From Oikopleura dioica (lineage: Eukaryota; Animalia; Chordata): DNA of 64,000 nucleotides. This document shows positions 9,630-47,200 of this stretch, piece by piece. The stretch covers positions 16,317,208 through 16,381,207 of the forward strand of contig OU015568.1 of NCBI GenBank assembly GCA_907165135.1, read 5' to 3'. The notes beneath the pieces are model-generated. The model saw only the letters and a program-made list of their open reading frames with translations, did not search any database and was not told where the DNA came from. Every line of letters starts with the position of its first letter. The stretch's first letter is position 1. Position numbers and translations under genes: made by a program.

Positions 9630-10849
9630 ATGCGTTTTGCACGAAAACTCTCGACCCGTGTTTGGAGTGCTACTGAATATGGAAACCCCTCAAAAGTACT
9701 GTCATTGAGAGAAGTCGAGATTCCCACTACACCGCTGATCAAATGTGACAATAGCCACGTGACTGTGAAAGTAAACGCCGTATCGTTGAATCCGATCGAT
9801 CACTGGATGGTCAACGGGCGCGGAAAGAATCTCCGAGAGATTTGGGAGAAGCTCGGCAATACGTTTGGGCTCTCTACGCACGACGCATCTGTCGGCGTCA
9901 TCCCTGGTCGAGATTTCCATGCGACTGTGATGAAAGATGGAGAAAGATTCAAAAAAGGCGATCATGTTGTCGGTGTCAGACATCCTTTCGACTCGGGCTC
10001 CTTGCAGGAGAGAATGGTCTTGAATGAAAAGGCACTCTTTCCGGAGAATGGGCAGCTTTCACCCGAGGAGAATGCCTGTCTTCCGTTCGTCACTTCTACT
10101 ATCATGTCGTCTCTTGGTTAGATTATAAATCTTAATAGAGTTGGATTATTGATTTTCTAGGGATAAGCGGTGGAATATCACTTTTCGGATGTCCTACTGT
10201 GAAAACGCTTGCTGACGTAAATACGAAAAAAATCCTGATAGTTGGTGCTACAGGAGGGCTTGGGACCGTCCTAACACAGCTCTTGCTTCAAGACGGGGCG
10301 ACAGTTGACGTAATCGGCGGAAGAGAAGTATGGAAAATCGAGAACGCGGGGAAAGTCTTGGATTATCACGATGAAGAGTATAGGAAGAGATTGGTGGACG
10401 ACGACTATGATTTTGTATTCGACTGCGCGGATGGAAAAGCGTAAGTAACAGGGCTTCTTATCTAAAGCTTATCTTCTAAAGAAGAAAATATACCCATGAA
10501 ACTTTTCTTTAGCCACGAATGGGTGGGTCGCTTTATGAAGCACGAGAAGTCAACTTTAATCAGCTACTCCTCGCCACTCCTACAAATGCTCGGTTCAATG
10601 TCGGCGATGAGTGTTCCCGAGTTCATCCTTGTCCACCAAAAAGTTCAGTCCGATCTGAGAAAAGAAGCGGGCGCCGGCGCCGAATTCCGCTTTGGCTTTT
10701 TCTCCGAAAGACAAGCTTATTTTGAGCAAATTTCTAAAATTTATTTCAAACCGACTATTTCGAAAGTTTTTGATTTTGAAAGTGTTCCGGAGGCTTTTGA
10801 AAGTATGGTCTCAGAATCGCACTTTGGAAAAATTGTCATAAGACTTTAA
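9630..10849 (+). CDS. RTN4IP1: Reticulon-4-interacting protein 1-like NADPH quinone oxidoreductase (MDR family)
   Basis: VKVNAVSLNPID, IPGRDFHATV, nucleotide-binding ILIVGATGGLGT and C-terminal HFGKIVI; three exons. Confidence 0.85.
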
Positions 10850-11026: not shown

Positions 11027-13690
11027 ATGGATTCGGCAGTTGAGTTTATGGGTGAGTTTGGCGAAAGTTAAAAAGTTTTTTTAATAAGAGGAAAAATGAC
11101 TATGATCTTGTTGGACGATCTTGAGATTCATTACGATTCAGAAAACAACTGGCAGCGCTTTCTGAAGAAAAAGAAGAAAAAGCCAGAAAGTGAAGAAGTG
11201 CCAGCGCCGTCTGCGAAAACGAGGAAGAATTCGGAAAGTTCCGTTGACGGTACGTTTGAATTTTTCTTCGTCCGACATCTTTGATTTTCTTAGAAAATAA
11301 TAATAATTACGACGAACCAGCAGATTCCGACGAAGATGCCCCGAAACAGACCAACACCGGCGCGTTAACATGGGGTCAAAAGATCTTCCGGACAAAGTAC
11401 ACGTGCCCTGGGACGAATCGAACGAACGAATTCATTTTCCGAACATGGCTCAACGAAGTCATCAAATACATTTGCTTCCTGACTTTGTTGACTATCTGCA
11501 CATTTTCGTACACAAATTCCGACAGTTTTTATTTGACAAATGCGATGAAGACACTGTACGTCGAAGACACAGGAAAGGGTCTTATTCATCACCTAAAGAA
11601 TTCACTAAAACAGACTCGACCCTGACAAAAAAGGATTTCACGACGTAACGACTGAGAAAGAAATTTGGGACTGGCTCGAAGGGCCCTTTCTCAAAGCAGT
11701 TTACGAGAACCAGCTCCTTTATAACGATATGAGCACGCCGCCGCGGATCAGAATGCAGCGAGTGAACGCGAAAGACTGCGACATGCCTGGCTTTGTCGAC
11801 GAAGGCGAATTATGCTACGACGAGTATCACAAAGCGCGTGAAAACAAAGACGACCTGATTGTCGGATCGGATTTGCCGCAGCCAGCAAGATATACGGAAA
11901 TTCCAGGCGCGATCGCTGGTTTTGATTACTGGGGACAAGCGCTGCCCTATTTGAGAATGTACTGGGCGGGAGGATACCTCTTGCATCTCCCTGTTCCAAG
12001 CGACGAAGTTTTTGAAGTGCCAGCCAAAGCGATCGAGGACATTCGATATTTGAAGGATGAGCTACAATGGCTCTCACGTGGCGCTAGAATTCTCCTAATC
12101 GATTGCCAGCTTTACAACAAGAATGTGAATCTATACACAATCATTAGGATGTCTTTCGAACTACCAGCTTCCGGCGGCGTCATCACCCTCGACAAATTCA
12201 GCACGATCCATATCTACAGCTCTACCAGCACTCTCGACATTACCACTGTCGTTTGCGAGATTCTGTGGCTAATCTTGATCGGCTACTACTTTGGCGAAAA
12301 AGTGTATGAAATGAAAATTCTTGGATTTGGAGGCTTCTTCAAGCATCTTGCTCTTCGAACGCAATTCTTCAATTTGGTCTTTTCTATCGGAGTCGTCATC
12401 TTCAAATTGGTCAAGTATGCGATCATCGACACGGATGAAATTAGCAGCTGCGATCCTCAAACAGAAAATGATTGCTACTTGGCGAACTTTGTCTTCTGGC
12501 AGAATCAGTTCAACTATTTCCTCGCCATCGTCACTTTCCTTTCCTGGATCGAGCTGAACAAGTTCTTCACCGACTTCGAGAGCACGGCTGTTTTCACAAA
12601 AACTCTTCGACGTTGCAGCACGTGAGTCTACTTGACTTCAAGTACAGAACCAGCCGTTTTTTTTTAGTGACTTGACCGCCTTCATCATCGTTTTCTTGAT
12701 GGTTTTCTTGGCCTACGCCGAGCTCGGAGTGCTCATTTTCGGCGGCGAATTGGACGATTTTAAAAACATGTTCCACGCGACTTACACACTCTTTCGTATC
12801 ATTCTTGGCGACTTTGATTTCCATGCTATGGAAAGCTCGAATCGCATTTTGGGACCCACTTACTTCATTTGGTAAATCTTCGATTGTAAATATCCCCTTG
12901 ATAAAAGCTGAATCAGTTATGTCTTCGTGGTCTTCTTCATTTTGGTGAATATGTTCATTGCGATCATATCCGACACTTACTCGGAAGTTCGCGCGGAATT
13001 ATCTGTCCCTGGGGAGCATCACTATCCGGTTTCCGAGCAAATCGCGGTTCTTAAAGGTAAGCTTTAGTGGAAAAAGCCACTGAACGGCTTGCCTTGAGAT
13101 GAATCTTTACGTTATCATAACGTCAGATTACTTTATTTCTTCATAAGAGCGTTTCTGGGGTAAACTTGGCTGGACTTCAAATTCCGACGACGATGATTCC
13201 GACGATGGTAAGCCTTTCCGTTAGAAAAAAATCATGATTCCGCTGATTCAGAAAACCAAATCGACTGGCATAGCTTCAGAAAAGAAATGGAAAAGTCAGG
13301 CTTGGAAGAGGACGAGATTCAGTCTTACTTTCAAAAGTATGATGAGAATGGAAATCTCTTGCTCGACAGGAAGGAGTTCGCTAAGCTGGAGGAATCGTTG
13401 ACCAAATTGAAAACTCAAAAGGTCAGCCATCAGCGAAGAAAATCATAGGAACATTCTTATTTCTTTAGGATCTAGACACAGTCTCTCAAAAATCAGCGGC
13501 AGCTCCGAGTGTAGCTGCTGGAGACGTCTTTGGCCAAGCGCGAGAGACGTTTGTTGATAACGAGAACTTCGATCTTCTTCGAAACCGAGTTGCCAAAATG
13601 GAATCTGCCTTTGCCGATTTGACATTGAAAGTCGACGGAATCATCGTAAAATTGGATCAACTTGGGCAGCGACAGAAGCAGGTTTCGTGA
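11027..13690 (+). CDS. PKD2: Polycystin-2 / PKD2-like TRPP cation channel
   Basis: [11 protein letters not shown] (S1), [37 protein letters not shown], pore region [33 protein letters not shown]-hand [14 protein letters not shown] and a C-terminal coiled coil. PKD2 vs PKD2L not resolved. Confidence 0.9.
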
Positions 13691-18751: not shown

Positions 18752-20940
18752 TTATTTTCGTGTAAGAGTTATTGAATAAGCTCGAGGCAGAAGATACCAT
18801 TTTTCTTTTTCCATGTTGTAATTTTCGTTGACTAAAAGAAGAAACTCGTTGTTGTCTCCGTAATAAACAAAATCGTTGAAGCGGTTGAAGCATTCTTTCA
18901 TCATTTCTTCAGAAGCGTAGAATTCGCGAAAAAGAGGAACTCTGATTTGAGAGCCGGAATGGGCGATTAAAGTGTTTTGGAGAATGAATTCGGAGTTTTC
19001 GATTCGGTCCAGCACCATTTGGTGGAAAATTATTAAGCCATCGGGATTCAGGTAGGCGCCGGTGACGGTTAGGGGACGGGTGAAGACGATTTTGTGGTGG
19101 AGGAGGACTAGAGCAATGATTTTATTTAAAATCACGAGATATTTTCATAAAAACCTTCTTCAAAATAAAAATCGCCTTTAATTTGATAGCAAAATTTTTT
19201 GATAATGTCCCATCCACTTTCATTTAAATAAGTTCCCAGTTTCATTCTTTTGAGAAGCAAGTCAACGTTATTTGTTTGAAATTGTTGCTCTTCTTCTCTC
19301 GGATTCAGATTCAAGCCAGCCAAACTGCGGGGGTAAATAATCATCGTCATATGAGTGAAGATGTTTTCGAGAGTAAAATTTTGTTCCATTATATAGTCAT
19401 CAATTTTCAAATCATTTTTGAGTGCCCATCTCAAAAGAACAGAAACTGAAATGGGGACACAAAGATTGCTTTCTTTTTGGTTTAAAACTCTCTTCGTCAC
19501 ATTTTTGAAGTCGAAATTGATCTGTCTCGTCAGTTTTTGTTTGAGATTGGCCATTGCCGAGGATTTCGTCAAATTTGGATCGTCCAGGCAAAAATCAGGA
19601 GCCGCGTTCTTCAAAGAAATTATTTTGGACAAGTTTTCGATTTCTTTGTTTGATGGTGGATGTTTTGTGAGCCACTCAGCATTACAGGACTTAAAACGGT
19701 AATTTATAAAAGGCTAAGAAGACTTTCCTTCAATTCTTCTTCGATTTTTTCTCGTTCATTCTCTTCGATTGGCTTGAACAGAAGACTCCAAGCTGTTTTC
19801 CAATCACACAGAATCAGAATGTGAAGTGGTGATGCATATTCGTCGCCTCCATATTCCCCACAAAGTTGATGGCCTTTCGAAAAAGCAGCAGATCCAGCAT
19901 CTTAGAAAATTAATGAACACAGAAGCAATCTATGTTCAAATAACTTGAATTTAAAACTTACATAAACATTCCATATCTCTATATTTGCTCCCTCTCCTCG
20001 CGTAGCCCATTCTTTGATAGCTCTCTATTCCAGTAATTTCACAAATAGTTCCAAAATCTATCCATTTGCATTCTCCATTTTTCAGTAAAATATTTTCCGG
20101 CTTCTGATCGCAATGCCAAATTCCAACCCTTCCTAAATACTGCTCTCCCACTCTCACTTCAATCGCGATTTTCTTCCTTTCTTCCAAATTCAAATTCTCT
20201 TCTTTTAATCTTCTTCGCAAATCGCAGTCGCACTTTTCCATAATTGTAATCCATCCAAGGCAGTCCTCTCTTTTTCCGTCTTTGCTCGAGTAAATTTCGA
20301 TGTTGCAGAAATTCTTGATCACGTTTGTGTGCACTGGGATTACTTCGTCGTCTTCTTTGTCGTTTGTCGCGGATCCATAATCTTGAAATTCTAGAATATC
20401 AAATTGTCGAATTATTCGATGATGAATTTAAAAACCTTTCAAAAGATGAATCCCAAACTCCAACTCCTCATTCTCCTCCACAAAAAGCGCGGAGTCAAAA
20501 ACCTGAACCCGAACAGCCACTTCTAATTCTCCAAATCTCTCTTCCAAAACAACCGCTTCTCCTCCAGAAGAAATAATTCTTCGTTGAAGAAACTCATCGA
20601 GAATCCATTCTCCAGTTTCTTCTTTTAATTCCGAACGTTGAATTTTTCGCCCTTCGAATTGAGGATTTTTTTCGAGGATCATTTTTTGAAATGAAGTTAT
20701 TTCCCATTCTTCCGATTCTTTTTCTCCGTATTTAAGGTAAAAAACTTTTCCTTTTCCATTTTCAAAAATAACCTCCTCCCATCCAGCACACCCATCATCT
20801 TCAAACTCGCTTCTCTCCACCGACAGAATCAGTCTATCCAAATTATCTCTGCTCGTCGTTCTTTTCAATTTCCTTTTAAAATCTTCCAACCATTTCTCAA
20901 TGACGTCTCTGGTCAATTCTCTTGGATGAAATTCGTTCAT
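18752..20940 (-). CDS. Protein kinase + papain-like (C1-type) peptidase fusion protein, copy A (5 exons)
   Basis: Exons splice into one frame. Kinase motifs HTNVI, IMEKCD, HCDQKPEN, WIDFG. C-terminal FDFKNVTKRVLNQKESNLC, FHQMVL and FILQNT. Third intron (19690-19727) has a GA donor. Confidence 0.8.
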
Positions 20941-21113
20941 TCTTGCTTTGATGGGGAAAGGAACTTTGGTTTTTAGAATGTTATGGAAGAATTGAGTTTT
21001 CTGCGAAATAAAACAAGCGAGATTCCCGCTGAAAGAGAGAAAATCAAATATTGAAATAGTATCGAATGTCAGTTAAGTAAATCCAGAAAAAGCGAAAGTC
21101 CAACCTTCAAAAA

Positions 21114-21266
21114 TCTGAAGACGATAACCGCAAGAATGACCGCATTATATTTTACTTGCGAGGACACATGTTGAATATTTACACCGGAAATGCTTCCGAC
21201 GAGATTGCAAAGATGACCGACATCGCTCTCGAGATAAAATGGTCGAAGATTCTGTGCGCCGATTGA
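21114..21266 (+). pseudogene. Orphan copy of the last exon of the coiled-coil gene at 44.3-47.7 kb
   Basis: Translates as SEDDNRKNDRIIFYLRGHMLNIYTGNASDEIAKMTDIALEIKWSKILCAD*, versus SEEEKRKNDRIIFNLRGHMLNIYTGNVSDEMAKMLDIALELERSKIPCAN* at 44265-44459. No upstream exons are evident. Confidence 0.7.
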
Positions 21267-21698
21267 TTAACAATAGTCTATTGTCAATAGAGTCCCAAAA
21301 TTAAGCCGCCTCTTTGATCCGAAATCGCTAAAAACCGGCCAAATTTGGATCCTTTTGCGATAAAAAGCCCGTTCACTTATCCTACCACGAATCTTTATTA
21401 ATTGAATCGAATATGAAGAAGGGAAACAGAAAGTATTCGATAAATCTCGTTTATCGAAGTGACGATGACAATTTGAAAGAAAAAGTATAATTTGGTTTGT
21501 ACAGTTAAAACGGAAGTATGAGATTAACCAGGTTGATCAAACTGACGATGATAATTTGAAAGAAGAAAAAAATTTATATTGTAAATCAAGTTTGAGCGGG
21601 AAGCGCGTTAGAAATCTCATGGTAAAGTTTCAGAATTGGGGTTCGCGCAAAGCCAATGTATTCTCGCGAACCTCAGATTCTGCCATCCTCCTCAATGG

Positions 21699-24600
21699 TT
21701 ACTTCGATACCCACTGATCGGCCGCCGAGGTGTCAAGATAGACGAAATTTCGCACAGTGTCAGATCCGGAAGCATCGTAGAAGTTGTCAGAAACGAAGAA
21801 ATCGAAATTTCCGGTCGACGGAGCAGATGCCACTGGGTAGCTATCCGTAAATAACGATTCGTTGTCAACAACAATTTGGGTATACATAAGGCCCGAAGCC
21901 TGATTAATGAATTGTTCGGCAACGATGGTGTACCATTGGCCCGGCGTGCATGGCTTGTCAACGTATGAGTGATGGTGAGCGCCGTTAGGATTGTTGACGC
22001 CGATGTAGAATTTGCTTTCATTGGGGTAGTGGAATATGATGAATTGCCGATCGCCAACTGCGCCTCTGTTTTCGGATGTAGACGTAACTCGGAGAATATT
22101 CTGCCATTCAGTTGTCGAAGATGAAGAGCAAAGAACATCGGCGACAATTTGATAGGATTGAGAAACAGTAACAGATTTCAAGAGATTGTTTCGGCTTGGA
22201 TTGACCCCGCAGCCATCAATTATGTTCGTACAGATAACTGGATCCCCTATAGATGGATCCAAACATCTGTCGACGGCGCATTGAGCAACTTCTGGTAATC
22301 GTTGGTAGACGAAGTTCTTGACTGTGAATGCGGTTCCGGCAACGTACCAGTCGTCAGCCACGAAGGCTTTAAGCTCTTGGCCTGCACCGAAGGCCTGAGC
22401 GTAAGCGTAAATCTTCGAGGAAATTTCAACTCCGTCATGAGTGACAGTGAACTGAACATTTTCTGGATCACCAGCAACTTGATGGACGTCGACGGCGATG
22501 TTGAACCACTGGCCATCAGTGCAGGTGAAATCTGTGTGGTGCTCGCCGTCTGAATCAGTCGGATCATTGACACCGATCCACATTTTTTGCTCGTCTGGGT
22601 ATCGGAAGAGGGCGAAGGTTCGATCACCAAGGCTGGTATCGTCCTCTCCTTTAGTAACGTGGAAGATATTTATCCATTCTCCGACAGGCATGCTGTGATC
22701 GCAGTATACGTCTGCAGAGAATTGGTAGTTGATGGAAGAGGTGAGGGTGGCGGCTTGGACATTTCTGACCGGGACGGCGGCGCAGGCGTCGACGATGACA
22801 TCGCAGTTGTCAAGTCCGGCACAAGGATCTTCAGAAACGCACGGATCTTCCGTGGTTGTTGTCGTAGTCGTTGTTGTGGTTGTAGTTGTAGTGGTTGTTG
22901 TTGTAGTTGTGACATCTTCGAATCGTTGATAGACGAAATTTTTGACAAAATACGTGGACGCTGCAGGATACCAATCGTCGGAGACGTATGCTTCAAGATT
23001 GCCAGCGAATGCTGAGCTGAACGGGTACGAACCAGATCCAAGAGATTCTCCGTTCTTAGTTACGGTATATTCAACAAGTTCTAGATCAGCAGCATTTTGG
23101 TTGGCTTCGACAGCGATGTTGAACCATTCTCCATCAGTGCAAGTGAAAGTCATGGCATGTCCGAAATCTGAGTCATTTGGATCGTTGACTTCAATCCACA
23201 GTCTGTCATCGCTAGCATATCGGAAAAGAGCGAAGGTTCGATCGCCGAGGGTGGTATCGTCGGTTCCTTGGGTAACGTGGAAAATGTTCAACCAGTCGCC
23301 GGTTGGCATGCTGTTGTGAGCACAGTAAACATCAGCGGAGAAGCGGTAGTTGACGGCGGAATTGAGAGCTCGGAGTTGAGTGTTTCTGACGGGTTCTACT
23401 GGGCAGGCACCAACGATTGCCTCGCAGCTGTCAAGGCCAGCGCAGGAATCTTCGGAGTGACATGGGTCTTGGGTGGTTGTCGTCGTTGTTGTAGTGGTGG
23501 TCGTGGTTGTTGTGGTTGTGGTCGTTGTTGTTGTGGTTGTGGTCGTTGTTGTCGTGGTTGTTGTTGCGTCTGCAAATCGCTGGTAAACGAAATTTTTGAC
23601 AAAATACGTGGACGCTGCAGGATACCAATCGTCGGAGACGTATGCTTCAAGATTGCCAACGAATGCTGAGCTGAACGGGTACGAACCAGATCCAAGAGAT
23701 TCTCCGTTCTTAGTTACGGAATATTCAACAAGTTCTAGATCAGCAGCATTTTGGTTGGCTTCGACAGCGATGTTGAACCATTCACCGTCAGTGCAAGTGA
23801 AAGTAATAGCATGCCCGAAATCAGTATCTTGTGGATCGTTGACTTCAATCCAGAGTCTGTCATCGTTAGCGTATCGGAAAAGAGCGAAGGTTCGATCACC
23901 AAGGGTGGTATCGTCAGTTCCTTGGGTAACGTGGAAAATATTCAACCAGTCGCCGTTCGGCATGCTGTTGTGGGCACAGTAAACATCAGCGGAGAATCGG
24001 TAGTTGACGGCAGAATTGAGAGCTCGGAGCTGAGTGTTTCTGGTGGGTTCTACGGCACAGGCACCAACGATTTCCTCACAGCCATCAAGGCCAGCGCAGG
24101 AGTCTTCGGAGTGACATGGGTCTTGGGTGGTTGTCGTCGTTGTTGTAGTGGTGGTCGTGGTTGTTGTTGTAGTGGTGGTTGTCGATGTGGTGGTAGTTGT
24201 TGTTGTTGCGTCGGCAAATCGTTGGTAGACGAAATTTCTGACCACATAGGCTGAACCAGCGGGGTACCAGTCGTCAGAAACGTAGGCAAGAAGATTGCCA
24301 TCAAAAGCTTGGCTTGTGGCGTATGAGTTTGTGGCGATTTCAGCACCGTTATGAGTGACAGAGTACTGAACAGTATCAAGGTCTCCTTCGACTTGTCGTT
24401 GTTCGACAGCAATATTGAACCATTCACCGTCGGTGCAGCTGAAAGTTGTGGCATCCTCGAAATCAGTGTCAGTTGGGTCGTTGACACCGATCCACATTCT
24501 GTTGTCGTTTGCGTATCGGAAGAGAGCGAAGGTTCGGTCACCAAGGCTGGTATCGTCAGTTCCTTTAGTGACGTGGAAGATGTTCAGCCACTCACCAAAT

Positions 24601-25418
24601 GGCATACTGTGGTCGCAGTAAACGTCAGCAGAGAAGCGGAAGTTGACGGCGGAGTTGAGAGCTTGGAGTTGGGTGTTTCTGATCGGGGTGGTCGCGCATC
24701 CGCCAACGATCACCTGGCAGCCGTCAAGCCCAGCGCATGAGTCTACGGAAAGACATGGGTCTTCAGTGGTTGTTGTCGTCGTTGTTGAAGATGTGGTAGT
24801 TGTTGTCTTCCCGACGCAGGAGCTCTCCCAATCTTCTTTATTCCAAAATGGCGGTCGGAACTCGCCGTCGACGCAACGCACTCGGCCGTTAAAAGTTCCA
24901 TCTTCGCAGAAGACATCGTAACTGGCTCGCTTTTTGTTGATCAGCCTGGCAAACGTGAGCGATCCGTCCTGGATGCTTGTGGCGGCAGCTGCGGCGTCGC
25001 AAGGATGAGCTGGTTTTGGTGAGCATCTCAAGGTGGTTCCAGCGGGAAGATTTCTTGAGTAGAGGGTTAGAACGATCTTTTTTGTGTAGACTTACTTTCT
25101 AGCGATCGTAGCTGGATCTCCACATCGAGCCATAAATCGGACGCCGTCCTTTTTTGGCTTCGAGATTGATTTCTCGGTCCATTCCGGGTCCATTCCCTGA
25201 TTACAGATCGGATGGCATCTGACCTTGGATCTCAATTTGCCGTAACCTGGGCAAAGCCACGATCCATTCTCTACGGGAAACAGATCCTGTGTCTCGTCGA
25301 TTTTGGCATCGCAGAGAACTCGTCGAGCTTCTCTCTCGTCCTGAGTCAGCTGGTTGTACTGCTGAAAGTAGCCTCCTTGGACAACTCCGACGGCTGGAAG
25401 GTATTGGATGAGCTTCAT
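21699..25418 (-). CDS. Secreted ~1225-aa modular protein: Cys-rich N-terminus, five ~190-aa ConA/LamG-like modules with poly-Thr linkers; oikosin (house protein) candidate
   Basis: Exon 1 (25418-25096, MKLIQYLPAVGVVQG..) joins the 1110-aa ORF through a 42-nt GT-AG intron (25054-25095). Repeat unit ..WLNIFHVT.GTDDT.LGDRTFALFRY..CTDGEWFNIAVE..YVSDDWYPA; Thr runs of up to about 30 residues. Confidence 0.85.
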
Positions 25419-38112: not shown

Positions 38113-38370
38113 CTAATTCGAACGCCATGTCGAGCATCTTGGCAGTCGATCGAAATACGAGTCGATTCCATTTTCCCACTTTTTGTCGAAGAAAGCGAGT
38201 TCTTCGTGATCTGTAGAGACTTTGACTTTCGGATGCGCTGTCATGTAGTAGTGGAGCGCGATGGTGCCGCATTTCTTTGCTCCTAAGCCGATCACATTTG
38301 GCAGTAATTTGCGCTTTTCTCGCCCGTCCGGGTCTGCTTGGCACTCATCGTGTGAATTCGAAGGTCAAAT
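38113..38370 (-). pseudogene. Truncated sulfotransferase exon (HS 3-O-sulfotransferase-like 5'-PSB motif), copy 1
   Basis: KLLPNVIGLGAKKCGTIALHYYMTAHP..ELAFFDKKWENGIDSY; breaks off into an AAACGTCGGTT repeat. Near-identical to 42390-42610. Confidence 0.7.
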
Positions 38371-38379
38371 ACTACAATA

Positions 38380-39544: not shown

Positions 39545-39727
39545 TTTCTGATTTCAAATACATGTATTACGATTCAAATAAAATCTCAAATGGTTTGATC
39601 TTTGTACTCAAAATGTCTCAATATTTGACTTACTCTCATGCAGCGAGAGTCTATTTTACTGTTTGCAGAAAATTAAATTTTGCCGCAAAAGTCAAAAACA
39701 AAAATATCCTTTTTCGTCAAAGAAAGA

Positions 39728-41975
39728 ATGAACGAGTTTCATCCAAGAGAATTGACCAGAGACGCTGTTGAGAAATGGCTGGAAAATTTCAAAAAGAAAT
39801 TGAAAAGAATGACGAGCAGAGATGATTTGGACAGATTGATTTTGTCGGTCGAGAGATACGAGTTTGAAGATGAACTTTGTGCTGAATGGTGGGAGGTTAT
39901 TTTTGAAAATGGAAAAGCAAAAGTTTCTGGTAAACATAGATATGATTCATATGAAGAATGTAAAATTTCTTCATTTCAAAAAATGCTCCTCGTCAAAAAT
40001 TCGCAATTCGAAGGACGAAAAATTAAACGCTCGGAACTCAAAGAAGAAACTGGAGAATGGATTCTCGATGAATCTTTAAAGCAAAAAATGATTTCTTCTG
40101 GAGGAGAAGCGATCGTTTTGGAAGAGAAATTTGGAGAATTAGAAGTTTCGGTTCGGGTTCAGGCTTTTGACTCGAAGCTTTTCTCGAAAGATGACGAGGA
40201 GTTGGCGTTTTTAATTCATCTTTCAAAAGGTTACTTTAGTTTTTATTCAGTTTTCTTAATCGAATTTAAGATTACGAAATCGCTCAAAACAATATAAGAG
40301 ACGACGCTCCAGTAATCCCAGTTCACCCAAACGTAATCAAAAATTTCTGCAACATAGAAATTTTTTCAAGCAAAGACGAGAAAAGAGAAGACTGCCTTGG
40401 ATTGATTACGATAATGGAAAAGTGCGACACTGATTTGAGAAGCAGATTGAAAAAAGAAGATTTGAGTTTGGAGGAAAGGAAGAGAATCGCGAATGAAGTG
40501 AGAGAGGGAGAAGAGTATTTGAAGGATATTGGAATTCTTCATTACGATAAGAAACCCGAAAATATTTTATTGAAGAATGGAGAATGCAAATGGATTGATT
40601 TTGGCACGATTGAAGAAAGAACTGGAAGGGAGAGCTATCTAAGAATGGGCTTCGCGAGGAGAGGGAGCAAATATAGAAGTCATCAATATTTATGTAGGTT
40701 TTAAATTGAAGTCACTTTATTATGATTTGCTTGCGGTTTGATTTATTCCTAGATGCTGGTTCTGCTGCTTTTTCGGAAAGTTCCCAACTTTATGGAGAAA
40801 TAGGAGGAGATGCATCACCACTTCACATTCTGATTCTTTGCGATTGGAAAACAGCTTGGAGTCTTCTCTTCAATCCAGTCGAAGAGGATGAAAGAGAGAA
40901 AATCAAAGAAGAATTGAAGGCAAGTCTTCGTCGCCGCTTTTGAAATAATAATTTCTAGTCTTGCAATGCTGAGTGGCTCTCAATAAAAACTCCATCAACC
41001 GAAGAAATCGAAAACTTGTCAAAAACAATTTCTCTAAAAAACGCGCCTTCTGATTTTTGCCTTGACGATCCGAATTTGACCAAATCATCAGCTTTGGCCA
41101 ATCTCAAGCAGAAACTGACAAGACAGATAAATTTCGACTTCGAAAATGTGACAAAGAATGTTTTAAATCAAAAAGAAAGCGATCTTTGTGTCCCCATTTC
41201 AGTTTCTGTTCTTTTGAGATGGGCACTCAAAAATGATTTGAAAGTTGGAGATTTGGAAATAGAATATTTTTTCACTCTCGAAAAAATCTTCACTTTTCTG
41301 ACAATGCTAATTTATCCGCGGAGTTTGGCTGGCTTCAATCTAAACCCGAAAAAGGAAGAACAAGAGTTTCAAGAAAACGAGATTGAATTGCTTCTCAGAA
41401 GAATGAAATTTAAAACGTATTTGAATGAAAGTGGATGGGAGATTATAAAAGGCGTACGAGTAAATGGCGATTTTAATTTTGAAAAAGGTTTTTATTAATA
41501 ACCAAAGTTAAGTTTCGTGAATCTGAATCAAATACATATTCTAGTCCTCCTCCACCACAACTTCGCCTTCTCCCGTCCTCTAACCGTCACCGGCTGTTAC
41601 CAGAATCCCGACGGCTCAGTAATTTTCCACCAAATGGTGCTGGACCGAATCGAAAACTCCGAATTCATTCTCCAAAACACTTTAATCGCCCATTCCGGCT
41701 CTCAAATAAAAATTCCTCTTTCTCGCGAATTCTACGCCGAATACCACTTCATGGAAGATTGCTACAATTGCTACAACGATTTCGTTTATTATGGCGACAA
41801 CAACGAGTTTTTAACTTTGACAAATGAACAGTTCGGCATGACAGAAGAAACGTGGTACCTTCTACCTCACGCGTATTCAATAATTCTCACTCCAGCTGAA
41901 GAAGATTCTTCAGATTCGTCAGAAGCATCTAGCTCTGAAAGTTCGGATTCAGAAAACAAGGTGTATTCGGTGTAG
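39728..41975 (+). CDS. Protein kinase + papain-like (C1-type) peptidase fusion protein, copy B (5 exons, about 680 aa)
   Basis: Introns 40230-40270, 40694-40752, 40920-40958 (GC donor) and one near 41490 give a single frame. Motifs HYDKKPEN, DFG, NQKESDLC, FHQMVL and LQNT. Confidence 0.82.
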
Positions 41976-42339
41976 GTTGCTTTGTTTCTGCACTTGATGT
42001 TAATGACTTCTGTTTTCGTTTGCAATTATATTTTATAAAGCTGATACAAAATAACTTTGACATCTGAAACTATTTCAATATTTCGTAGTATGGAAAAATA
42101 TTTCGGTAAGCTCATTTCTGGTTAGTGTTAGGGGGGTTCCAAGGCAGCGAAGCCCCCTAGGTTAGGCTTTAGGGTTAGGAACGAAGTACTTTTACCTAAG
42201 GGGGGTCCCGGGTTAGGGTTAGGTTTTAGGAAGAAACAAAAAGTCTCTTCCTTCTGTACCGAAATATTTATCCCTTCTACCCAATATTTGATTATCTCTC
42301 TCGCAGCGGCAATCTCGCTTTTATTTTGCAGAAAATTTA

Positions 42340-42591
42340 ATTTTGTCTTTTCAAAAGCAATTTCATCTTCCGCAACTTCCGGCAGTCGATCGAGATACCA
42401 GTCGATTCCGTTTTCCCACTTTTTGTCGAAGAAAGCGAGTTCTTCGTGATCTGGAGAAACTTTGACTTTCGGATGCGCCGTCATGTAGTAGTGCAGCGCG
42501 GTGGTGCCGCATTTTTTAGCTCCTAAGCCGATAACATTTGGAAGTAATTTGCGCTTTTCTCGCCCGTCCGGGTCTGCTTGGCACTCGTCGT
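42340..42591 (-). pseudogene. Sulfotransferase exon (HS3ST-like), copy 2; rest of the gene not found
   Basis: LPNVIGLGAKKCGTTALHYYMTAHP..FFDKKWENGIDWYLDRLPEVAEDEIAFEKT. No 3'-PB motif exon is recognisable downstream, so it could be a gene with exons I missed. Confidence 0.55.
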
Positions 42592-44017
42592 CTGAATTTG
42601 AAAGTCAAATTCTGGGAATTTTAAAAATTTGTCTCTAGAACGTTGTTTGTTCTTCGGGCGAAAATTATGGTTTTCTTCAGTCTTCGGATTTTGACAGTCC
42701 GGAAAGCAGCAAATTTAGGTAAAATTCAACGTTCTTTTCTGATTTTTAATCATTTTAAGATTTCTTCAAGAACAAGAAGAAGAAAGTTACCCGAAAGAAG
42801 GTAACAATAGCGATCGGAATAGCATATTCTGAATCAATGTGCTCTTTGCCTTACTGGCCGGTTTTCTTCTTCATTACCTGAATAAAATCAATTTTTATAC
42901 CATCAACTTTGGTGTGTTTTTACTAAAAGGCTCAGTTAGCTTAAATACTACTGTAGGTTTTGTTGTGAGAGAGTTTTGGCTATCAGGAGTTGTTTTTGAG
43001 CTGTCCCTATCTGTGGGGCTCGACAAGTCAGCCCCCACATAACTGGACTAGGCTCCCTGCGTACATATCCTGAGTCAGGTTTGGAAAAGGTTGAATGGAA
43101 ACCTGCAAAGCGGGTTCTTAAAAGAGGATGCCGTCAAATTTGCGGCTTCCTTTTTCGTAGAGCCGCTCTTCGGCTTAGTATTAAGGCTCTTCTATGAGCA
43201 GTTTCAAGTTAGAGCGCTTCCAAGTTAAGTTCATTTAGCGCAAATGGCTCTTGTCAAATTTTATTTTTGCATGAAAGAAGATTTCAGACAGTGAATTACT
43301 TTCTTGATCTTTTTTTGGTTATCCTTGTTAATTTTGTTTTAGGCGATTAACATTCTCAGGTCGGTTTTCGATGCACCGATCGGCACCGACCACCCTTTTT
43401 CAAGGTCACAGTCGGCCAAATGCTGACCAAAACCTACCTGACATTGACCGACCAAAGATCGACCGACCTGACCACGGATCATAACGAAAAAAAAACTTTT
43501 TTGAATTGGCGTCTCGTTGATTGAAATTTTCAAGAAATTTCAGCATCAGAAGACTCTTCTTTATTTTCTTGAGGAGGAGTGAGGGTGATTGAATACGCTT
43601 GAGGAAGAAGAAACATACAGCGAACATATAAGATTGAACACACTTGAGGCAGGAGAGGGCATCTTAGATCTTTCATTTTATTGAATCGCTTATTGCCAAT
43701 AAGTTATTGGTTAATGTAAGAATCTCCTTGTTGTCGCCATAATCGACGAAATCATTGCAGCAATTTTAGCAATCTTCAATGAAGTGTTATTCGTTGTAGA
43801 ATTTTCTGAAAAGAGGAATTCTGATTTGAGAGGCGGAACTTGAAGCGCATATGCCGCATATTAAATAGACTCTTGCTCTGAAATCCTACTACTCCACACT
43901 TTTTCAACTGAGCTGCATCCGGTCTAGCCGTTAAAAATACTTGAACCCTCTAGTGGGTCTATTTTTACCCAACATCTTTATCTGGGGCATTTCCGTTTGG
44001 ATGCTATATTAATAAAG

Positions 44018-44102: not shown

Positions 44103-44264
44103 ACCCTGAATTTACACTGTTATCTAAAAGAACTTTTCTTGATCACAGTCCATGTTTATTATTACATGCTTATTTATTAATGACTGGGATCATACAGAAG
44201 TAAAACTGAAGAAGTAAAGCAGGTGGAGAGATTGTCAAGCAATAGATGCTTTGCTTCTAATAAA

Positions 44265-47200
44265 TCAATTGGCGCAAGGAATCTTCGACCTTTCTAGTTC
44301 GAGCGCAATGTCGAGCATCTTGGCCATCTCGTCAGATACATTTCCGGTGTAAATATTCAACATATGTCCTCGCAAGTTAAATATTATCCGGTCATTTTTG
44401 CGCTTCTCCTCTTCGCTCTCCAGCTTCATTTGTTTGATGTTATCTTGCGCAGATGCCAAGTCAGCGCGGACTCTCTCGAGGTCAGCTGATTTTCGGTTGA
44501 AGTCGCGATTCTTCGATCGAAGCTCAGATATTTCATCGGACTTTTGACGGTTGGACTCTCGTTCTTTTTGGAGTTCTTGGCGAAGTTTCTGAAAAAATTA
44601 TTAAATAAATTGGATAAAAATGGCCTTATAATATGTAAAGATCAACTCGTGGAGCCTAGGATTGTCTCAAATTTGTAAATTTGACCATTTTGGAATGAAG
44701 AGCTTGTCTGTCATTTACCTTGATAGAGTCGTCATTTGCCTTGCCACTATTCGAGGCTTTTTCTATTGCCTCTCGCATTGCTCTCAGTTGTCGTTGATGC
44801 ATGGCTTCAGCGTCTTCCCACTGGCTCTAAAAAAAGTCATCCAGACCACTTCCAGACTAAAGAACTCACCTCGTATCGTTCACTTTCTTCTTTCATTCTA
44901 TACTGAAGCTCGAGAACTTCCCGCTTGAGCGCTTCAATTTCTGCATCTTTGTCGACTCCATCATCGACGACCGCATTTTTGCTCTTTTCCGCTTCCAGCT
45001 GTTTCTTGAGCTCTCGATTTTTCCGCCGCTGTTCTCTAGAAACAATCATATAAAACACTTTACAAATGCCTTTTCTGTCTACCTGAGCTCATTTTCCAGC
45101 GCGCAGACTTTGTCATCGTAGAGCGTCATTTGTTGAATACTTTCAATTTCGCTCTGAAAAGAAAAAGATCAAGCGGTGCCTAAGAGATTTTCCGTGTTTG
45201 ACTTTGCAGCTATTGCGGCCCGGCCAAATACAGAACACCACTGACGTCACCCGTAAAACAAATGCAAATCGTTATTTCAAATAATCACGAGTAAATATTG
45301 AACAACTAAGCCCTGACTTATGTGCTTTCGCTCTTTGAAAATCTGTTTCTAATCTTGGTCAATCCTTCTACCCTTTGAAAGTGCGCCTATCAACTGAAAT
45401 TGAAAGGTACTCTTCTATGATTTCAATGAAAATAAGTATAAAATTTACGAAAGAAAATGAATTTGAAATGGTAAATTAGACCTTGATTTAGTGACTTTTT
45501 TCGAGCGGCTGAGTTTCTCTTTGTAGATCAAGATGACCATTAAGAGGTCATTTAGTATGTATCCCATGGCGACCATTATTAATAATGAGGATGGGGAACT
45601 CTGCGAGTAAGAAAAAATATCACAGTTCCTCTTTCTCCCCAAGTGGTTTTGAAAACACACTTGACTCTTTCGATTATCAGACAATTTTTCCTCACCTCAA
45701 GGGCTTTTATTTTCTCCTGGGCGTCTTCTTTCTCTTGGGCGGAGCTTCGGAGCTGTTTGTGCAAGTCTTCTTTTGCCGAAATTAACGCTGCAATTTCTTT
45801 GTCTCGCGATTTGAGGTCGCCTTTTTGCCTCTCATGGGATTGTTTCAAATCCTCAAGCTCCTTGCAGATGCGGTTCGATTCCTCTTCTTTTTCTCGCTTC
45901 GCTTTTCTCGCAGCTGACTCTGCCCCGTGAGCGCTCTTCAACGACTGAACAAAAAGCAAAATTATTTAACCCCAAAATACTGATCCCAATTCGCTCGAAA
46001 TTGAGATGCCGGGAAAGCGAAAATGGCGAAAATTAATTCGTAATTGGGCGAGAGCTCGCCCGGAAAAAAAATATTCAAAAACCTTGAAGTCTGGCCAAAA
46101 ATGAGTGAATGGATCATTGCAGTCATTATTGTAGGAAAGAGGCAAAAAACTCTTCATAAAACATGAGCTCATTTCCGGAGACAGGTGCATTTGATTCTCT
46201 ACAAAGGATGCTAAAAGTGGATCTGGTAGAGATTGTCCAATTTCAAGTCAACTTCAAGGTTAGGGTTAGGGGGTCGTAGAGGGTTACAATTCGGGCAACC
46301 CCTAACCTAAGGGGCTCTACCCCCTGGGGCCCCCAGTAGTTACCTGCAGTCCCCTGGCCCTAACGGCTAAACGAGATAAGCTCTTATACGAACTTAATGC
46401 GTCCAAAGGTTAAATTTGCTTTAAAAACATGATAAAAGGAATTTTTAACCAAGAAAAATCGATATTTTTGCCAAAATTAGGGCAAATTGGTCAATTTTTG
46501 CCGAAAAGTCCAATTTTCAAATGCGATTTCGGGGGTGAAGGAGTCGAGATAGACCCCCAAAAAATGAAGCCTCAAAATCGTTTTTTTAACCTGAAGAATC
46601 CATTTATTGGGTCAAAATTTTAAAATTCCGAAATTCGATTTTTCGAAAAAGGCTGACGGGGGTCCTTAATCGAAAGCTTTTTCTTATCTGTATCTCGTGA
46701 GCGTTAAATGAAAATATAAAAATAATTATAGAAGTTAGGGGTTCAAAGCAAAAACTCGATTTTCAGAGTTGACACCCTTAATTCAAAACCTATGTAGACA
46801 TTTGGGGAGCAGTCAAGACAGTAAACAGAGATATGGAAACTTGAATTGTATTTACCTCTTGAGCTTTTGCAAGCTTTTCTTTTAACTGCTCGGCGAGTTC
46901 TTTTGATTTCTTCTGCTCCTTTGATTGCTCCTGCAGGTGCACCAACTCCTCCTTGGGCAAAAAGGCCATCGCTTTATTGTTTTCCATTTCATCCTAAACT
47001 GCTGTCAAAACTCAGTAAAAGTGCTGCGCAAACGTTAGCCAGCTATTTTCGCCTCTATAAAAACACATCTGTCTCCAGTTTGGCAAATTAGTTTGCTCAA
47101 GCTTCTTTAATTTCCGCAATTTTACGCGGAATTCAGGAAGACAACGAAGCGCCGCAATTATGCGCTTGTACGTCGCTTGGCACGAAATCCTGTGTACGGA

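Follow-up and report, generated by a model that had tools for sequence, protein, structure and literature searches.

Within the analyzed window, a stretch of 64,000 nucleotides of the Oikopleura dioica contig OU015568.1 (assembly GCA_907165135.1, positions 16,317,208 to 16,381,207), a five-exon gene was found at 39728–41975 on the forward strand (hereafter gene A). It comprises 683 codons and a stop codon, and the translation of the spliced frame is open throughout. The original prediction, made for this region from the letters of the DNA, was a protein kinase fused to a papain-like cysteine protease in a spliced protein of ~680 aa, and the 683-aa open frame agrees with that length. Based on the computed gene structure, kinase fold, papain fold, papain-like placement of the active-site residues and near-invariance of these residues, gene A probably encodes a cytosolic multi-domain enzyme consisting of an N-terminal alpha/beta module, a divergent protein kinase, a conserved flexible linker of ~35 aa and a C-terminal papain-fold (clan CA) cysteine peptidase. 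The gene includes the following features:

39728–40229, forward strand: exon 1, the N-terminal alpha/beta module (aa 1–115) and the start of the kinase N-lobe, with the Gly-rich motif SSGGEA and the beta3 strand VSVRV, in which Arg143 is encoded at 40154–40156
40271–40693, forward strand: exon 2, the kinase core with the catalytic loop HYDKKPEN (40540–40563) and DFG (40597–40605)
40753–40919, forward strand: exon 3, AGSAAF (the end of the activation segment), followed by the alphaF helix LCDWKTAWSLL
40959–41487, forward strand: exon 4, the end of the kinase C-lobe, the linker (~41073–41177) and the helical lobe of the protease
41169–41171 and 41187–41189, forward strand: Gln435 and Cys441 of exon 4, within FDFENVTKNVLNQKESDLC, 6 residues apart
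41545–41975, forward strand: exon 5, the beta lobe of the protease and a terminal acidic tail rich in Ser (41892–41972), closed by the stop codon
41628–41630 and 41676–41678, forward strand: His569 and Asn585 of exon 5, within FHQMVLDRIENSEFILQN, 16 residues apart

The introns of gene A are 41, 59, 39 and 57 nt long. Three of them have GT-AG ends, and the third intron (40920–40958) is GC-AG, i.e., it has a GC donor. Non-canonical splice donors are frequent in Oikopleura, and the tiny introns and non-canonical donors of the gene fit an Oikopleura-type (appendicularian) genome. Across the exon junctions, the translation of gene A follows the unbroken sequence of related proteins. The protein starts with a hydrophilic helix, and reading the sequence revealed no hydrophobic stretch resembling a signal peptide; no I29 prodomain was found in gene A by the Pfam search. 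The lack of both a signal peptide and an inhibitory prodomain had been part of the original prediction.

The N-terminal region was assessed using a full-length AlphaFold2 (AF2) model of a relative, P0090 (697 aa, 56-row alignment), which had a mean predicted local distance difference test score (pLDDT) of 80.7 and a predicted template modeling score (pTM) of 0.80. Residues 35–135 of P0090, corresponding to residues ~1–115 of gene A (39728–40072), were predicted to form a confident alpha/beta module (pLDDT ~90), for which there was no Pfam match.

To describe the C-terminal domain (~225 aa in gene A), an alignment (A1) of 51 C-terminal domains was used, with the exon pieces of gene A and of its paralogue B from the same window included. 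The AF2 model of the domain was that of the first row of A1, P0090:396–697, which is 48% identical to gene A. Its pLDDT averaged 80.8 and was above 90 in most of the core (residue 81 onward). When this model was compared with 48,161 representative PDB chains by VIA-align, 50 of the 50 listed matches were clan CA (papain-fold) enzymes. The top matches were Der f 1 (Z 9.6, 153 aligned residues, root-mean-square deviation 3.5), Der p 1 (9.5), calotropain (9.3) and xylellain (9.2). Further matches included cathepsin B (Z 9.0) and PCAT1 of the C39 family (8.7), then caricain, falcipain, staphopain, ComA, UfSP and ATG4. The best rows of a Foldseek search against PDB, a check proposed together with AlphaFold in the original prediction, were weak in score but mostly papain-fold, i.e., ComA, PCAT1 (C39), staphopain and a viral tegument-like deubiquitinase (DUB); phytochelatin synthase, a Josephin-type clippase and AvrRpt2 were also found. 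In the ESM Atlas, shape neighbors with a Pfam label belonged to C39, C1 or C2 clusters, and the language-model look-up provided weak leads only (<0.9). Among viral predicted structures, Foldseek found no clear counterpart; the top row was an uncharacterized mimivirus protein (E 0.0036). Consequently, a two-lobe papain fold of clan CA is supported for the C-terminal domain by the model of its close relative, in line with the papain-like assignment made from the sequence.

The four putative catalytic residues occupy the corresponding places in the domain model. Cys80 is the first residue of the predicted helix 80–95, and Gln74 precedes it by six residues. His213 is located within the strand 210–221, and Asn229 follows the partner strand 224–228, so that the two strands form a beta-hairpin. 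The two-residue turn pairs Asn opposite His+3, which is the same register as that of papain His159/Asn175. In gene A, the codons for Gln (41169), Cys (41187), His (41628) and Asn (41676) were all read in the three-frame translation of 39600–42100 at the positions and spacings predicted earlier. Among the sequences of A1, the residues are conserved as follows: Gln in 46/46, Cys in 46/46, His in 28/28 and Asn in 24/31. For gene A together with 33 relatives, the counts were 34/34 for Gln, 33/34 for Cys (one Ser), 24/26 for His and 21/25 for Asn; some of the exceptions sit in frameshifted tails of poor gene models. The spacings of 6 and 16 residues alone could have arisen by chance, but the near-invariance of the residues in the family and the fold match show that they did not. 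The papain-like placement of Cys441, His569 and Asn585 is thus supported at the level of the model, as is, with less confidence, that of Gln435, and the four residues are near-invariant among the paralogues.

The domain shares a number of properties with the peptidases of family C1, both C1A (papain, cathepsins and Der p 1/Der f 1) and the cytosolic C1B (bleomycin hydrolase, Peptidase_C1_2). These are the same two-lobe fold (Z 9.0–9.6), the same succession Gln–Cys–His–Asn (the first two 6 and the last two 16 residues apart), the Cys at the N-terminus of a helix, the His and Asn on a hairpin, and a faint sequence echo at the Gln/Cys motif. This echo is seen in the weak match of gene A to the Pfam model Peptidase_C1_2 (PF03051), which has an E of 0.024 over the Gln/Cys region (cut-off of 22 bits). 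When all 51 members of the alignment were searched against Pfam, sub-threshold matches to the same model were obtained for three of them (best E 0.0036). Unlike in C1, the hidden Markov model (HMM) match is not significant (best E 0.004, below the gathering score), and the family has its own invariant motifs as well as the kinase fusion. According to A1, the family-specific invariant positions include YPRSLAGLNLNP, Glu135, Gln139 and Gly-Trp 160–161. In contrast to C1A, gene A has neither a signal peptide nor an I29 prodomain. PDB sequences yielded chance matches only when searched with the C-terminal exons, whether as single sequences or as the family profile, and nothing useful for the domain was found in NCBIfam and PHROGs. 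Since there is no significant HMM match, signal peptide or prodomain, the domain is most aptly regarded as a new clan CA-like family and not as a member of C1.

The other close comparison is with C39 peptidases (ComA, PCAT1), which have a papain-fold core with Gln, Cys, His and Asp or Asn. They match the model at Z 8.1–8.7 over nearly the whole C39 domain, are also its best Foldseek and Atlas neighbors, and are likewise fused to an ATP-binding module. However, C39 domains are bacterial, ~130–150 aa long and N-terminal on ABC transporters, whereas the domain of gene A has ~225 aa, a larger helical lobe and no HMM match. Judging by the Z-scores of the model, the domain is inseparable from its C39-like relatives.

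The Pfam model Pkinase (PF00069) matches exon 2 of gene A with an E of 2e-11 and 44.2 bits, above the cut-off of 31.7. The HYDKKPEN and DFG motifs named in the original prediction are read at their places. The PDB sequences closest to the kinase were DAPK1 (E 4e-7), then p38gamma (MAPK12), CDK9 and Chk1, which are generic matches limited to the catalytic-loop region. With the full-length model of P0090, Foldseek retrieved kinases with a probability of 1.00 and an E of 2e-6, and VIA-align gave kinases at Z 9.3–11.9 over model residues 33–420. These matches were tied, including ULK4 (Z 11.9), PINK1, BRAF, RNase L (Z 10.3), IRAK3 and many others, and therefore no subfamily can be named. Based on the Pkinase match and the bilobal fold, the domain is a true kinase fold, the activity of which is uncertain.

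Several catalytic residues of the kinase are invariant across the family, namely the HxD Asp (27/27), the catalytic-loop Lys (27/27) and Asn (27/27), and the DFG Asp (28/28). The position of the beta3 lysine is occupied by Arg in all 21 of the family sequences compared (Arg143 in gene A). Among the features that define an active kinase (beta3 Lys, alphaC Glu, HRD Asp, catalytic-loop Asn and DFG Asp), the family thus lacks the beta3 Lys and a conserved alphaC Glu. ULK4, the top structural match, and KSR resemble the family in that their beta3 lysine is replaced, here by the invariant Arg; KSR has an Arg at this position. Unlike pseudokinases or atypical kinases without the beta3 lysine, the gene A family retains without exception the Asp of HxD, the Lys and Asn of the catalytic loop, and the Asp of DFG. 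With all these residues kept, phosphotransfer may be possible.

The two enzyme domains are joined by a linker, LTKSSALANLKQKLTRQINFDFENVTKNVLNQKES, of ~35 aa (residues 403–437 of gene A, 437–471 of P0090). The full-length model gives this segment a pLDDT of <50, yet its conservation within the family is strong. The ratio of nonsynonymous to synonymous substitution rates (dN/dS) between A and B, calculated by the Nei-Gojobori method, was 0.37 for the N-terminal module, 0.30 for the kinase, 0.13 for the linker and 0.48 for the protease core, with an overall value of 0.34. Selection between A and B is purifying and rather relaxed, and the linker is the most constrained part. As judged from its sequence conservation and predicted lack of structure, this segment is a candidate regulatory or self-cleavage site.

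To find relatives of the C-terminal domain, an HMMER search with exon 4 was conducted against 1.84 billion representative proteins, which resulted in only 67 clusters, mostly fragments. A word-indexed search from a 664-aa match gave 29 proteins, almost all of them from Oikopleura dioica. All named relatives are from O. dioica, and the labels of these entries do not go beyond "protein kinase domain-containing protein" or "unnamed protein product". Of the 29 proteins, many are 640–795 aa long and have both parts, and gene A is ~45–50% identical to them. The other cluster members that were looked up came from marine metagenome contigs of ENA or JGI, and the two contigs traced were from Tara Oceans. 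Matches to a Chitinophaga repeat protein and a guinea-pig papilin-like protein were rejected as distant and repetitive, and they look spurious.

Two further copies are located in the window:

18752–20940, minus strand: paralogue B, intact, five exons, 662 aa, with ~75% protein and ~80% DNA identity to gene A
43542–43867, minus strand: a broken third copy with the C-terminal part of the protease only and two in-frame stops (tblastn)

The intron positions of paralogue B are those of gene A, and its third intron (19690–19727, minus strand) is GA-AG. All eight introns of A and B are 38–61 nt long. The DNA similarity between A and B (~80%) begins ~110 nt before the ATG and stops where the coding sequence ends. 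As it ends at the gene limits, the duplicated unit is the gene itself and not a larger element. Altogether, the family is a lineage-restricted, multi-copy, fairly fast-evolving appendicularian expansion.

Several points weigh against the proposed enzyme. No sequence family was significant for the C-terminal domain in Pfam, NCBIfam, PHROGs or PDB sequences, the Foldseek search against PDB was weak (best E 0.04), and the fold was modeled for a relative with 48% identity instead of for gene A. The Z-scores of 8–10 are modestly above the VIA-align background, in which Z 7–8 is common; the papain fold is assigned because the list is uniform and the whole core is covered (residues 68–302), not because of Z alone. 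In the active site, Asn is replaced in a few members and Cys is replaced by Ser in one, and the segment bearing the Gln was modeled with low confidence (pLDDT of ~65 in the domain model and <50 in the full-length one). With the beta3 Lys changed to Arg and a non-conserved alphaC Glu, the kinase could be catalytically dead. In addition, the RNA reads of four runs with the same species label gave no match specific to the gene A copy.

A possible alternative, though clearly a less probable one, is that the domain, although papain-fold and equipped with a live Cys/His pair, does not act as a general endopeptidase and would instead remove ubiquitin or ubiquitin-like proteins or perform acyl-transfer, transglutaminase or deamidase-type chemistry. 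Several papain-fold enzymes carry out acyl-transfer, transglutaminase or deamidase-type reactions. The cytosolic nature of the protein, which has no signal peptide or prodomain, is consistent with this explanation, as is the presence of UfSP, ATG4, ZUFSP, Josephin-type enzymes, viral tegument DUBs, phytochelatin synthase and PeiR among the fold matches, with Z within 2–3 of the top. However, the matches at the top of the list and the sole sequence signal, a weak one, are to C1-type peptidases, and no ubiquitin-binding feature was identified.

It is rather improbable that both modules are pseudoenzymes and that the protein acts as a scaffold or sensor, the domains of which only bind partners. 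The change of the beta3 Lys to Arg in all members and the non-conserved alphaC Glu would fit such a role, and so would the pseudokinase ULK4 as the best structural match of the kinase (Z 11.9), although it is tied with many active kinases. The rather relaxed dN/dS values of 0.3–0.5 point the same way. On the other hand, members with only 30–50% overall identity share all the remaining catalytic residues of the two domains with few or no exceptions, which is hard to explain without catalysis.

The integrity of the gene was also considered. A run search listed no run known to contain the stretch. Three bulk and one single-cell RNA-seq runs were compared with the segment 39500–42200 (2,701 nt). 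The reads fitting this segment numbered 1–30 per run and were all partial, covering conserved stretches of 35–130 nt (e.g., 40833–40867), and beyond the fitted stretches they continued into unlike sequence. These reads belong to paralogues or another strain, and therefore the splicing of the gene A copy is neither supported nor refuted by them. The two contigs carrying relatives are Tara Oceans metagenome records (one labeled METAG) and not cDNA, so they provide evidence of collinearity and not of transcription. That the fusion is an artefact of the gene model, with the kinase and the C-terminal domain being two adjacent genes, is highly improbable: no transcript evidence was obtained for the gene A copy and the exon 3–4 intron depends on the non-canonical GC donor, but paralogue B keeps the five-exon layout, the intron positions and the reading frame, the deposited O. 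dioica gene models of 640–795 aa have both parts, there is neither a start codon context nor a stop between the parts, and the full-length model assigns the helices from exons 3 and 4 to the kinase C-lobe (up to model residue ~420), which they complete, so that the kinase fold crosses the supposed gene boundary. Gene A is accordingly read as a single gene because of the exon structure kept in B, the deposited two-domain models, the collinear metagenome open reading frames (ORFs) and the kinase C-lobe spanning the exon 3/4 boundary.

Some additional observations concern the copies and their surroundings. Gene A ends with an acidic, serine-rich tail, EEDSSDSSEASSSESSDSENKVYSV (residues 657–683, 41892–41972), which is absent in paralogue B and in the other members with displayed C-termini; this tail may be prone to phosphorylation. 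A stretch of 152 nt past the broken third copy (44263–44414) is 84% identical to 21117–21268, located upstream of paralogue B. The sequence of this remnant, together with the broken fragment, suggests an internally deleted third gene. A motif of ~64 nt occurs just upstream of the start codons of A and B (39619–39682 and 20990–21053), and a third, lone copy lies downstream of A (42282–42345). The lone motif may be a further duplication remnant, or a shared promoter or 5′ UTR (untranslated region) element. Gene A is also flanked by a direct repeat of 233 bp (38141–38373 and 42381–42613, 92.7% identical), ~1.35 kb upstream and 0.4 kb downstream of the gene. The downstream repeat copy overlaps a minus-strand ORF (42128–42484) without a Pfam match.

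Neighboring ORFs were scanned in the part of the window upstream of 31 kb:

9630–10121, forward strand: an ADH_N-like ORF, an ordinary host gene
11729–12625, forward strand: exons of a polycystin-type cation channel (Polycystin_dom, E 1e-17), an ordinary host gene
21699–25031, minus strand: a GC-richer ORF of 1110 codons with faint mucin and laminin-G-like Pfam signals, directly upstream of B

The possibility that the genes are the cargo of a mobile element was considered and rejected, given that the A-B similarity is confined to the gene and its immediate upstream ~110 nt and the neighbors scanned (all upstream of 31 kb) are ordinary host genes.

Based on the reading of gene A as a kinase joined to a papain-fold peptidase, we suggest the following mode of action. 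The C-terminal domain would function as a thiol peptidase or isopeptidase, with Cys441 as the nucleophile, His569 as the base and Asn585 as the residue orienting the His, and Gln435 would help to form the oxyanion hole. The kinase may bind a nucleotide and may either phosphorylate the protease or gate it allosterically, by analogy with the coupling of kinase and effector in IRE1 and RNase L. The linker would be a candidate regulatory or self-cleavage segment in this scheme.

IRE1 and RNase L have the same layout, i.e., a kinase or pseudokinase followed by a hydrolytic effector in one chain, which is a likeness of layout and not of membership. RNase L (Z 10.3) is present among the VIA-align kinase matches and IRE1 is the first Foldseek row, both on a par with dozens of unrelated kinases. 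In these two proteins, the effector is a KEN-domain RNase and not a protease, and there is no evidence in the gene A family for activation driven by dimerization.

The pattern of expansion would fit roles in signaling or in conflict and defense. A more specific proposal, which we consider doubtful at present, is that the family represents appendicularian-specific kinase-gated proteases involved in innate defense or regulated cell death. In such a case, the N-terminal module or the kinase would sense a signal and turn on the papain-fold protease, and the switch could be self-cleavage in the "CLDDPNLTKS" linker. The expansion, pseudogenization and fairly fast evolution of the family would then reflect an arms race.

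Full-text searching of the literature found nothing on this gene family or on a kinase-papain fusion in Oikopleura, and there is no Pfam or NCBIfam model for the C-terminal domain. The blank Pfam, NCBIfam, PDB-sequence and literature searches are in agreement with the earlier remark that the architecture was not recognized from known metazoan families. No described metazoan architecture is known that combines a kinase with a papain-fold cysteine protease in a single cytosolic chain; what is new here is a papain-fold family in a new fusion that is restricted to one lineage. The invariant beta3 Arg beside an otherwise complete catalytic set makes the family a test case for kinases without the canonical lysine. 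If both halves are active, the protein would be a natural case of direct coupling between a kinase and a protease. A new family of clan CA would then be defined, and it would serve as a marker for innovation specific to this lineage, in a chordate that evolves fast and has a very compact genome.

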